Shown one piece after another: positions 48,170-55,624 of a stretch of 64,000 nt of DNA; position 1 is the stretch's first letter; every line of letters starts with the position of its first letter. This stretch comes from Scyliorhinus canicula. Taxonomy: Eukaryota. The translations under genes were made by a program, and so were the position numbers. Under the pieces are notes generated by a model. It saw nothing but the letters and a program-made list of their open reading frames with translations. It searched no databases and was not told where the DNA came from. The DNA lies in the NCBI RefSeq assembly GCF_902713615.1, contig NC_052153.1, positions 191,255,394 through 191,319,393 on the forward strand, in the 5' to 3' direction.

Positions 48170-48296
48170 TTAAACTGCTGGGTGAGATTCTGTGCGGGGC
48201 GAGTGGGATAGGTTTATGTTGCAGTTTATATATTTGGGTTCTCCCCTTCCTGCGATGGGTCGGTCCTTCCTGGGTTCTTCCTCAGCCTGATCCTTC
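48170..48296 (-). CDS. Terminal cytoplasmic exon of the Ig receptor: (R)KDQAEEEPRKDRPIAGRGEPKYINCNINLSHSPRTESHPAV*
   Basis: Acceptor gtctttattcccag|, phase 2, matching the TM exon donor. 127 nt including TAA. Tyr motif YIN at 48224-48232. Confidence 0.75.
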
Positions 48297-50522
48297 CTGG
48301 GAATAAAGACAAGATCAATTAAAATGAGCCAAATTAACAGTAAGATAACATTTTCAACACCTCCAGATACAGCCAGCACCTGTTTAAATAGGATTCCTCA
48401 CACATTTAAAAACAGATCTAATTATTGGTACTTGTGTTAAATATTAACCGAGTGGGCAGGATTTTCGAATGGTCTTCCGTTCCCCAGTATATTACCAAAT
48501 AGGATCCTGAATTCTCACTCGCCGGGAGACAGATGGGCGGAGCAATCATCCAGAAGGCAGCATCCTAACTGGCTGCCTCTGCGTTCGTTGTCTGATTAAG
48601 GACACCATGCTGGTTCTCAATGTAACCGGCCCAGTCAGAGAGTTGGCAGATCTGGAGCCTTAAACAGGTGAGTGCTGCTCAGTCACGAGGATGCTGAGGC
48701 ACATTGCTGAAGGTTTGAGATAGACTAGGCCGGTGGGCCTTCACCGGGCACAGATCGCTGGTTCTGATGGATCCTCCAGGTTGCTGTACTGAGACCACCT
48801 CCACTGAGCTGGCAGCCTCCACGAGTGGGGGGGGGACATCTGTTCCGTCACCGGCAAAATCCCAACAGGCCCAAGCATTCGCCTCTAATTGCCTCCAGGC
48901 ACCTGTCGATGGATCAGCTTCCCAGGCCATCCATGGGAAACGTCCCCCGTTTAGGGAATGTGGTGGGAAGATGTCCTCAGGCAGTTTCCCCTCACACCCA
49001 GCCCCCCTCCACCTCCAAGCCCCTCCGCTGCCTGTAGGACAGGAGAACGCAGCCCAAAAGGGAGGATTTTCTACCTGGGGATTTTGACACGAGTAACAAA
49101 AACTTGTGTTTATATAATCGCACCTTCCATGTAGCAAAACGTCCCAAGACCATAACAGACAAAACCTGACACAGGAGATATTAGGACGGGTGAGCAAAAG
49201 CTTGGTTAGAGGGCACAGCAAGACTTCACGAGACTGTGAAAGCCTCATTGCCACGGTCTGAACAGCAGCCACTACCCAGAGTGCAATTCCTTTCCCCACT
49301 GCTGTGGAGAGTGGTTAGTTATTCTACAATAAATGGGAAAAAAATCTTAGATTGGAAAATTACCAGGACTCTTACTGCCAATATTTATTCATTTAAAATT
49401 AATTACGGGATGTTGGCTTCACTGGCTAGGCCAGCGTTAGTTGCCCATCCCTAGTTGCCCTTCAGAAGGTGGTGGTGAGCTGCCTTATTGAACCGCTGCA
49501 GTCTTTGAGGTGTAGGTACACCCACTGTGCTGTTAGGGAGGGCTTTCCAGGAGTTTGACCCAGCGCCAGCCTGTTTAAAATCTCAGCCATTGGCTGGAAT
49601 TGAAATAGTAATAATAATCTTCATTGTCACAAGTTGGCTTACATTAACACTGCAATGAAGTTACTGTGAAAAGTCTCTCGTCGCCACATTCCGGCGCTTG
49701 TTCGGGTACACGCCGATATATTTCCCAGTCAGGGAGGTGAGTGACTTGGAGGGGAACCTCCAGATGTTGAGGTTCCCAGGTATCTGCTGCTCTTGTCCTT
49801 CTAGATGGGAGTGGTTGTGGGTTTGGAAGGTGCTGCCGAAGGAACCTTGGTGAGTTAATGCAGTGCATATTGTAGATGGTACACACGGCTGCTACTGTGC
49901 ATCAGTGGTCGAGGGACCCAGCACTGGAATCAAATAGAACTAAATCATATTTAAATCTAACATCTCCTGCAGATATCCTACAGATTAAAGTAGACTCCAG
50001 CGAATGTGGAACGATCTTGTGGCGGAGTGGGTACCGTCTCTGCCTCTGAGCCAGGATTTCCTTTACGAGTCCCACCCCAGGACTTAGTGGCCAAGTAAGA
50101 TGTGTTCATAACACGGCCAAACAGGTTGATTATTAAACCTTTCCAACACACGCCAATGACAGGCAATAAGGGCGGGGGAGATTCCTGATCAGCCAGGACA
50201 AGAAATCGGAGCCTCCGCCATCACTGTCCACAAACGCAGGTTACCACATGCATGTAAACATTAATGTCACGGTGACTCAGACTCCCTGTGTAAACTGCAG
50301 CACACCGTCATTGTGAATGGAGGTGGCCTGGGGGGGGTTAAATCAGGTCTGTGACACTTCAGTAGGTTCATGCTGTGAGGAGCTGAATCGTGCAGACCAG
50401 GAATGGGCCGGTTTCCATCCCCTGTCTGAGCTAATCCCAACTGGGCTGCAGTAGGAGCTGGTGTAACTGCGACAGGGATAGGGAGACTAAACATTGAGCA
50501 GGGTGCCTGCTCCCATTGTATC

Positions 50523-50944
50523 CAGTGACCTGTGCTGGACACACACTGTGCGGCTCAATCAGAGTGGCCCAGTGACCTGTGCTGGACACACACTGTGCGG
50601 CTCAATCAGAGTGGCCCAGTGACCTCTGCTGGACACACACTGTGCGGCTCAATCAGAGTGGCCCAGTGACCTGTGCTGGACACACACTGTGCGGCTCAAT
50701 CAGAGTGGCCCAGTGACCTCTGCTGGACACACACTGTGCGGCTCAATCAGAGTGGCCCAGTGACCTGTGCTGGACACACACTGTGCGGCTCAATCAGAGT
50801 GGCCCAGTGACCTGTGCTGGACACACACTGTGCGGCTCAATCAGAGTGGCCCAGTGACCTGTGCTGGACACACACTGTGCGGCTCAATCAGAGTGGCCCA
50901 GTGACCTGTGCTGGACACACACTGTGCGGCTCAATCAGAGTGGC
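50523..50944. repeat. 47-bp VNTR, 9 copies
   Basis: cagtgacctgtgctggacacacactgtgcggctcaatcagagtggcc repeated. Confidence 0.97.
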
Positions 50945-51033
50945 ACCTCTGTTCAAATCTCCTGCCAAGACACACTGCCCAAGGGTCACCTGCGAATCGA
51001 GCTTTGCAAAGGCTCCCAGTAAAAATTCCATAC

Positions 51034-51133
51034 CTGATTTTGTCCCTCAATAAAATGATCCACATCACGAGCAGGGGAAGGAGTTTCACTCCAAGTGGAA
51101 TGCACAGTATCACAAGGGGGAAGGGCTGTGCAG
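51034..51133 (-). CDS. Transmembrane exon of the Ig receptor with intramembrane Lys: (A)AQPFPLVILCIPLGVKLLPLLVMWIILLRDKI(R)
   Basis: Strong acceptor ctctttcctttctgttcag|, donor |gtatgg, 100 nt, phase 1 to 2. Hydrophobic span with K (codon 51084-51086) followed by an RDKIR stop-transfer. Confidence 0.85.
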
Positions 51134-54127: not shown

Positions 54128-54244
54128 GGTGACGAAGATAAACCCTCTTGCTGGCAGGGGTAAAAAATATAACAATCACAGTGTTAGGGCTAACTACTAT
54201 AATGACCATGGTCTGAGGGGTAAGCACTGTGGTGTAAGGATGCA
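54128..54244 (-). CDS. Candidate stalk exon of the Ig receptor: (V)HPYTTVLTPQTMVIIVVSPNTVIVIFFTPASKRVYLRH
   Basis: 117 nt, open, phase 1 to 1, so compatible with both the V and TM exons. Strong donor |gtgagt; weak acceptor (gtgtaaaag|) abutting a SINE fragment. Confidence 0.4.
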
Positions 54245-54329
54245 CTTTTACACACAAAGCCAAAGATGTCTAGGTTGGGTAGCTTGAGTGGGCCGAGGTG
54301 GAGTTCACTTTCTGAAGGTCACCTAAATC

Positions 54330-54982
54330 TCCAAAAATCTGTCCTGGTCCACCCACATCGACGCTACCACCAAGAAAGCACAACAGCGCCTATACTTCAT
54401 TAGGAAACTAAGGAAATTCGGCATGTCCACATTAACTCTTACCAACTTTTACAAATGCACCATAGCAAGCATCCTATCGGGCTGCATCACAGCCTGGTAT
54501 GGCAACTGCTCGGCCCAGGACCGCAAGAAACTTCAGAGAGTCGTGAACACAGCCCAGTCCATCACACAAACCTGCCTCCCATCCATTGACTCCATCTACA
54601 CCTCCCACTGCCTGGGGAAAGCGGGCAGAATAATTAAAGATCCCTCCCACCCGGCTTACTCACTCTTCCAACTTCTTCCATCGGGCAGGAGATACAGAAG
54701 TCTGAGAACACGCACAAACAGACTCCAAAACAGCTTCTTCCCCACTGTCACCAGACTCCTAAACGACCGTCTTATGGACTGACCTCATTAACACTACACC
54801 CTGTATGCTTCACCCGATGCTGGTGTTATGTAGTTACATTGTGTACCTTGTGTTGCCCTATTATGTATTTTTTTTCATTCCCTTTTCTTCCCATGTACTT
54901 AATAATCTCTTGAGCTGCTCGCAGAAAAATACTTTTCACTGTACCTCGGTACACGTGACAATAAACAAATCCAATCCAATCC
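54330..54982 (+). mobile_element. Rex1/Babar-type LINE 3' fragment. Other copies at about 35516-35990 (-) and 500-640 (-)
   Basis: KKAQQRLYFIRKL, FYKCTIASILSGCITAWYG, LPSGRRYRSLRTRTNRLQNSFFP; (TCCAA)n tail. Confidence 0.85.
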
Positions 54983-55197
54983 AAGGTCGGTGCAGACTTG
55001 ATGGGCCGAATGGCCTCCTTCTGCACTGTAGCAATTCTATGGCTCCATGGTAAACGTCAATCCTGCTGTGGGATCTGAAGCCATAACTTTCTGATTCAGA
55101 GGTAAGAGCACAACCAACTAAACCACATCCAATCAATGTTTCTAATTATACCGCTCACCCTCAGAGTACACTGGGGAATGCGGCAATGATTCCTTAC

Positions 55198-55624
55198 CAT
55201 GTTTGACCTGCAGCTGTGTCTCAGTCTGAATCAGGTATTGATAATGGACCCGTTCCCCCTTGTACTCCACCAGACACAGGTAAGTGTGACTATCATTCAC
55301 GCTCAGCTGCTTTATCCTGATTGAGGCGGTTCCCTCCTTTGGGTTCCCGATGAGCTCGTATCGATTTTCACCGTTTACAGTTGTCCACAATCCATTTGAC
55401 TGGGGTGTAAATGTGACCACCCGTTCATAGGTCTCCTTCCTCATCCAGCTAACAGTGGTCAGGGTGTGGGAGTACCTGGGTATGAACGTACAGGGCAATG
55501 TAACCGAAGCTCCCTCAGTGCCACTCACCACTAAGTCATTTCCACCGGCAGCTGAGGAAAGGACAAACAACAGAATGATCAGGGGTCTGGATAATGACCC
55601 GATCCAGTTAAGGGCTGTTAACAT
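55198..55624 (-). CDS. V-set Ig-domain exon of a Siglec-15/PILR-like receptor. Either leader plus V in one exon from ATG 55624, or a V exon starting at acceptor 55551
   Basis: Canonical V-set landmarks: LPC (B strand), VSW (C strand), ASIRIKQL..D..YLC (E-F strands). RYELIGNPKEGTASIRI resembles Siglec-15 RFRLLGNPRRNDLSLRV. Phase-1 donor G|gtaagg at 55198/55197. Phase-1 acceptor tttcctcag| at 55551. The in-frame upstream MLTALNWIGSLSRPLIILLFVLSSAAG looks like a signal peptide. Confidence 0.85.

Follow-up and report, generated by a model that had tools for sequence, protein, structure and literature searches.

Exons of LOC119970764, a predicted two-V-domain receptor gene of Scyliorhinus canicula related to Siglec-15

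[quoted passage not shown] Located on its minus strand are three exons that, with a probability of roughly 0.87, represent the final coding exons (V2, transmembrane or TM, and tail) of the gene LOC119970764. The encoded product would be a type I membrane protein built from a leader, two V-set immunoglobulin (Ig) domains designated V1 and V2, a TM segment containing a lysine, and a short cytoplasmic tail. The gene has already been annotated in RefSeq and is thus not an unannotated one.

Exons and architecture of the receptor gene

When the three exons are joined, they encode 192 residues. A BLAST search with the spliced model matched all of these, at 100% identity, to residues 162-353 of P0227, the S. 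canicula RefSeq entry "uncharacterized protein LOC119970764" (353 amino acids). The 161 further residues at the N-terminus of P0227 consist of a leader, MKNTGGMAMTTVYIGLSTVLLSTPLLG, and the first V domain. A Pfam search delineated two V-set stretches in P0227 and no C2/I-set domain; P0047 from Callorhinchus and P0126 from a bird do show C2/I-set domains.

The V exon, which corresponds to V2, extends from 55198 to 55551 on the minus strand and encodes residues from about 162 to 279. Its upstream flank consists of a pyrimidine tract with a cag acceptor (AG at 55552-55553), it ends with ATG at a gtaagg donor (GT at 55196-55197), and both of its boundaries are in phase 1, which is the usual rule for exons of the Ig superfamily. 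Its translation is recognized as a V-set domain (Pfam PF07686, E 1e-16). The second exon, of 100 nucleotides, lies at 51034 to 51133 on the minus strand and encodes the stalk and the membrane-spanning segment. It reads AQPFP-LVILCIPLGVKLLPLLVMWIILL-RDKI, with a charged lysine, and is flanked by ttctgttcag on its upstream side and by gtatgg following a terminal AG, with phase 1 at its start and phase 2 at its end. This exon is 100% identical to residues 279-312 of P0227, and its identities with other sharks range from 67 to 79%. The coding portion of the last exon spans 48170 to 48296 on the minus strand. It follows the acceptor ttattcccag and specifies a 42-residue cytoplasmic tail, KDQAEEEPRKDRPIAGRGEPKYINCNINLSHSPRTESHPAV, that contains the motif KYINC and terminates with a stop codon at 48172-48170; it is 100% identical to residues 312-353 of P0227. 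The 3' untranslated region of the gene extends below 48170. In an initial annotation of this DNA, the V, TM, and tail exons had been proposed to join in frame, and this is borne out by the canonical splice sites, the matching phases, and a product identical to the RefSeq model. Their co-splicing is likewise upheld by the same exon order in the whale shark, and both the TM string and KYINC are indeed present in the DNA.

The initial annotation had also described a receptor with a single V domain. The annotated protein contains both V1 and V2, however, with V1 lying past the end of the window. Searches of 55552-64000 with the family leaders and with full-length P0227 (tblastn) yielded no match to leader or V1 exons. 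In the assembly, LOC119970764 extends over 52.8 kb; the window reaches 8.4 kb past the V exon in the upstream direction, and the intron between V1 and V2 in the whale shark is 12.5 kb in length. The "single V" is thus an artefact of the window edge. The earlier claim that no C2-set exon separates the V and TM exons stands, and such an exon is found nowhere else in the window when searched for with six C2 domains of relatives (tblastn; all E > 0.1).

A model of P0227 was calculated with AlphaFold from a 36-sequence family alignment, and its mean predicted local distance difference test score (pLDDT) is 78.6. The model displays two confident V-type sandwiches, with pLDDT values for V2 that are mostly >90, and a single helix formed by residues 285-317. 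The tail is disordered. When the model was employed in a fold search, the top matches were two-V proteins, among them JAML (E 4e-15), single-chain variable fragments, and pIgR. JAML is the best match to the whole model because it, too, has two tandem V-set domains, and some members of the family described below are in fact named "JAM-like" by NCBI. The likeness is only architectural, however, given that the sequence identity is about 20%, the TM-scores are 0.3-0.45, and there is no common anchor motif. The fold search confirms the two-V architecture of the predicted model and nothing beyond it.

Siglec-15 and the receptors of sharks and rays

The best match to V1 of P0227 among solved structures is Siglec-15 (7zoz, E 4e-14). 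In the alignment, the cysteines of LPC, FRC, and C (PCES) fall on Cys 64, Cys 95, and Cys 104 of Siglec-15, and YHC-R-VEL falls on Cys 142 and Arg 143, such that the F-strand arginine is retained (YHCRVEL over YFCRVEF of 7zoz). In the V domain of human Siglec-15, Arg 143 binds the carboxylate of sialic acid, and disulfide bonds connect Cys 64 to Cys 142 and Cys 95 to Cys 104 (PMC10264397). V1 of the catshark gene, although outside of the window, thus resembles the Siglec-15 of tetrapods and bony fish in its four cysteines and in the arginine of its CRVE motif. V2, the domain that is encoded in the window, has a leucine in place of the arginine (YLCLVEY) and only the canonical pair of cysteines. 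It is 35% identical to the gull Siglec-15 and matches 7zoz with an E-value of 4e-9; it also matches V domains of pIgR and TIM (E 1e-8 to 1e-10). Note that the extra disulfide of pIgR domain D1 is absent from V2.

A tree computed by maximum likelihood from 63 V domains contains one clade (support 89/81) in which the V domains of bird and gar Siglec-15 are joined by the first domains of chondrichthyan genes and by V1 of the members of the P0227 family, these V1 domains constituting a clade of their own (100/100). A second clade (98/89) contains the V domain of the window, V2 of the other family members (99/99), and the domain in second position in the chondrichthyan V1-V2-C2 genes. In the membrane segment, the lysine is invariant in 15 of the 15 aligned anchors, which range from rays to birds and include two bird Siglec-15 proteins. 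The motif PLG(V/I)K is common to the catshark anchor and bird Siglec-15, and CIPLGVKLLPLLV aligns with the bird FVPLGIKVLILLV. By sequence, the membrane exon is homologous to the membrane segment of Siglec-15. A lysine-to-alanine replacement in Siglec-15 is reported to abolish binding of DAP12/DAP10 (Angata 2007, as cited in PMC7226832).

The proposal of a TM lysine of the activating type is accordingly well founded. That of a Siglec-15-like V domain requires division: the kinship itself is stronger than thought, given the homologous membrane exon, but the V domain of the window is not the orthologous one, for it lies in the V2 clade and is without both the arginine and the second disulfide. 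With regard to the overall plan, the catshark receptor and Siglec-15 have in common the PLG(I/V)K membrane motif, the invariant lysine, and a short tail that is not of the inhibitory type, and the DAP12/DAP10 route would be expected for both. They differ in that the second domain is V-set in the catshark and C2-set in Siglec-15, and in that the catshark gene is multi-copy and is accompanied by partners of near-identical ectodomain whose tails carry ITIMs, the tyrosine-based inhibitory motifs of immunoreceptors. In comparison with described Siglec-15, then, the catshark receptor varies both in its architecture, V-V rather than V-C2, and in having inhibitory partners. An architecture of the TREM/PILR/CD300 type had also been suggested. 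TREM, CD300, PILR-beta, and NKp44 do resemble the catshark receptor in combining an anchor lysine with a short tail, but the latter has two V-set domains and an anchor homologous to that of Siglec-15. The V1-V2 ectodomain is therefore not of the TREM/PILR/CD300 type.

Cartilaginous fish also contain V1-V2-C2-TM(Lys) genes, as represented by Callorhinchus P0047 (LOC103174418), Mobula P0043, and whale shark P0110. Their V1 and V2 types, the order of these domains, and the anchor lysine are those of the catshark gene, and in Callorhinchus, the whale shark, and the catshark they reside on the same chromosome-scale record as family members. They differ from it by the C2 domain that separates V2 from the membrane and by V2 domains that fall into separate clades. 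As candidates for the true ortholog of SIGLEC15 these genes are the better ones, with the window gene belonging to a C2-less branch. It was also observed that the cartilaginous-fish genes named Siglec-15 (Callorhinchus P0047/P0252, Mobula P0043, and whale shark P0110) are V1-V2-C2-TM rather than V-C2-TM, the build described for bony-vertebrate Siglec-15, and that Callorhinchus possesses both a lysine-anchored and a neutral-anchor form.

A protein search with the V exon returned shark proteins at 63-74% identity, most of which have an extra V domain in front. A search seeded with the whale shark relative produced 61 family proteins from sharks and rays, and one with the window V domain alone produced 81 clusters (E ≤ 1e-10 in both cases). 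The members are distributed among several shark orders, rays, and skates, and the nearest holocephalan relatives are the Callorhinchus V1-V2-C2 genes. Two endings are found after V2: in one, a very short tail follows a PLGxK anchor, and in the other, a neutral anchor is combined with a long tail with ITIM-like tyrosines (CTYASI and VTYAAV). The product of LOC119970764, with its leader, V1, V2, PLGxK anchor, and short tail, displays the features of the first group.

The lysine-anchored and ITIM-tailed members cluster together within species. Indeed, P0227 and the inhibitory catshark protein P0234 (LOC119970771) are 85% identical in V1 and 92% identical in V2. Such near-identical ectodomains within a species characterize paired receptors with sequence exchange or recent duplication. 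Similar arrangements are known in primates, where Siglec-5/14 and Siglec-11/16 comprise activating members with a charged anchor and inhibitory members with highly similar ectodomains; this pattern suggests concerted evolution. The primate pairs are CD33-related Siglecs with a V and C2 build, and their Arg/Lys anchor is of independent origin.

P0227 retains the V1 arginine, all of the cysteines, and the membrane lysine. Its twin, P0230 (LOC119970765), is 90% identical to it and has a cysteine in place of the V1 arginine. Following removal of near-identical isoforms, the arginine was found in 18/18 members of the inhibitory type and in 6/12 of the activating type, counts that are not phylogenetically independent. 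The residues replacing it in the lysine-anchored members are G, H, Y, C, or S. A broader proposal, to which we assign somewhat less than an even chance, is that LOC119970764 is one "on" member of an undescribed, elasmobranch-wide paired system derived from Siglec-15. In this system a second V domain would replace C2, the ectodomains of activating and inhibitory members would be kept near-identical, and only the activating copies would repeatedly lose the arginine, as has been proposed for pathogen-driven decoys among the primate Siglecs, the two cases being independent and about 400 million years apart. A description of the family was not found in the open-access literature on Siglecs or Siglec-15 of sharks, elasmobranchs, or cartilaginous fish, or on the skate MDIR receptors. 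The skate MDIR family was reportedly described by Cannon et al. in 2006. The suggestion of an undescribed receptor family may hold for the family, and it fails for the gene itself, which is annotated as LOC119970764.

Alternative readings and proposed mechanism

Three other explanations were considered. The one given the least credence is that of a self-contained single-V receptor in which a stretch beginning MLTALNW serves as the signal peptide, an adaptor is engaged via the lysine, and Grb2 is bound directly via KYINC. The sequence that lies upstream of the V exon is indeed hydrophobic and open from an ATG, V2-only isoforms are annotated in Hemiscyllium (P0007 and P0009, with the leader joined directly to V2), and KYINC is kept in both catshark twins. 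However, it is the acceptor at 55552/55553 that serves in the annotated protein, whose upstream continuation is V1, and the hydrophobic MLTALNW stretch is the translated pyrimidine tract of that acceptor. In the whale shark, the stretch upstream of the same V2 acceptor contains in-frame stops. Given the use of the acceptor in RefSeq and these stops, the proposed leader (about 55552-55624) is intron and was rejected, the residues upstream of V2 being provided by another exon. The length of 217 amino acids proposed initially must be reduced correspondingly, for 25 of these residues read through the acceptor, and the candidate stalk exon of a 256-residue version is found neither in the annotated protein nor in any relative of the activating type. 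Even the V2-only isoforms of other sharks still take the distant family leader exon (MRSLYVCLSAVLL...). The tail argues in the same direction. S. torazame has KCTNC where S. canicula has KYINC. The whale shark tail ends with KEQD and a stop, and the homologous DNA past that stop still reads CTNC in frame, with a cysteine codon at the position of the tyrosine; relative to the whale shark, the catshark tail contains a 21-bp insertion (AEEEPRK). The tails of Mustelus, Heterodontus, the whale shark, and rays are 7-35 residues shorter, with those of Mustelus and most rays and skates ending in ...AGS or ...TGS and those of Heterodontus, the whale shark, and a stingray ending in ...QD. The YENF of bird Siglec-15 does not align with KYINC. 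Because S. torazame has a cysteine and the other tails end earlier, the long tail is, from these alignments, a Scyliorhinus extension, and the YxN tyrosine is specific to S. canicula. The notion that the receptor carries its own YxN/Grb2 signal is not sustained, for the tyrosine is not conserved among orthologs.

The possibility that the gene is the plain catshark ortholog of SIGLEC15 is the least improbable of the three, and yet it, too, is very unlikely. In its favor, several family members bear the name "Siglec-15" at NCBI, Siglec-15 is the closest relative of both V1 and the membrane segment among solved and named proteins, and V1 groups with the Siglec-15 V domains in the tree. The second domain is V-set rather than C2, however, and there is no C2 exon; separate V1-V2-C2-TM(Lys) genes that keep the C2 domain exist in cartilaginous fish; many lineage-specific copies exist, of which this gene is one, and it has inhibitory partners; and V1 of the family members constitutes a well-supported separate clade. 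An unexpressed or decaying duplicate, the frame of which is open only through youth, falls between these two in likelihood and is similarly improbable. Such a state could be imagined from the repeat-filled introns and from the twin, so similar in sequence and lacking the key arginine of V1, and the RNA support consists of sequence words in runs of guessed type. The three exons are nevertheless intact with canonical splice sites, and the arginine, all cysteines, and the lysine have been kept in this copy. In addition, the ratio of nonsynonymous to synonymous substitution (dN/dS), calculated with the whale shark relative, is about 0.45 in the V2 and TM exons alike, and sequencing runs from several studies contain words from the V exon together with words from the tail exon, the RNA type of these runs being a guess.

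Several points weigh against the assignment of the exons to a V1-V2 receptor with an activating function. The RNA support is limited to the run words just mentioned, the RefSeq model is itself a prediction, and the leader and V1 are known from the RefSeq protein and not from the DNA. The adaptor pairing is deduced from homology of the membrane segment. Zebrafish Siglec-15 is reportedly a poor glycan binder (PMC7226832). Finally, because some relatives, such as the Hemiscyllium proteins, are annotated with a leader-to-V2 junction, a V1-skipped isoform of the catshark receptor may exist.

On the basis of the two-V architecture, a mechanism can be proposed in which V1 would bind sialylated ligands, probably sialoglycans, via its arginine, and V2 would function as a spacer or as a second recognition domain in place of the C2 domain of Siglec-15. 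[quoted passage not shown] The receptor would thus be the "on" counterpart of ITIM-bearing partners such as LOC119970771. The short tail is probably not a signaling unit, and its YxN motif may be a recent accident in the Scyliorhinus-specific extension.

The tail exon (48170-48296, minus strand) is also open in a second frame, which is reached by skipping of the TM exon. This frame reads ...RTDPSQEGENPNI and then a stop, ending with ...SQEGENPNI. Annotated isoforms of other sharks end with ...QEAEKPNVQTAV/I, in agreement with the TM-skip frame. A soluble V1-V2 isoform may thus be conserved, and use of this frame may explain the conservation of the tail exon at the DNA level.

Other features of the window and significance

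The intron between the V2 and TM exons (51134-55197, minus strand, 4.06 kb) contains open reading frame (ORF) fragments of the long interspersed nuclear element (LINE) type, a short interspersed nuclear element (SINE), and a perfect tandem repeat, and it contains no Ig exon. The initial description of this interval as repeat-filled is in keeping with these LINE/SINE-type ORFs and tandem repeats. Tandem Repeats Finder placed the repeat at 53014-53305 (36 bp x 8, 100% match), where it sits in LINE-like sequence, and identified a second at 50522-50944 (47 bp x 9, 98% match) within the 2.74-kb intron between the TM and tail exons (48297-51033, minus strand). Both repeats look young. The region from 55552 to 64000 (minus strand) is the 3' part of the long V1-V2 intron, which runs off the window. 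Within it are a GIY-YIG-type ORF fragment of a Penelope-like element (56449-56919, plus strand) and a 1.3-kb proline-rich, low-complexity block of G/C repeats (56896-58234).

About 20 kb downstream of the gene, at 28112-28147 on the minus strand, 12 residues (AALLLCSFTHPP) match the B-strand motif of V1. This stretch may be a decayed V1 relic or may have arisen by chance. The possible relic at 27872-28171 was not counted as an exon, for the CSFTHPP motif is all that it has of the domain (tblastn E 0.02-0.2). At about 9640-11770 on the plus strand are ORF fragments characteristic of a sodium:solute symporter, in agreement with the suggestion of an SLC5A6 gene; such a gene would be positioned tail to tail with the receptor gene. 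The largest of the minisatellites in the window is 5.5 kb in length (15703-21199) and is composed of about 257 copies of a 22-bp unit, GAGCGCGAGAGCCGGAGAGAGG, with a 93% match. Its GC content reaches 0.74, and its plus strand is almost free of T (AT skew 1.0). Further long minisatellites are located at 3191-4577 (21 bp x 67), 24527-26124 (31 bp x 50), and 31833-32816 (23 bp x 43).

The identification of these exons in itself adds little, given that the gene is in RefSeq and that the claims for a single V domain and for its own YxN signal fail. The significance lies rather with the family. Siglec-15 is a drug target, and the usual description is of a conserved activating Siglec that stands alone. 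In sharks and rays, Siglec-15 is seen within a large set of on/off receptors having a V-V ectodomain. Definition of the family corrects automatic names that are misleading, including pIgR-like, JAM-like, A33-like, MPZL3, and Siglec-10/12. The family also offers a natural experiment on the origin of paired receptors and on the possible coupling of arginine loss to activating signaling. If the proposal of an elasmobranch-wide paired system is true, the lone Siglec-15 of today would be the survivor of an ancient paired family.

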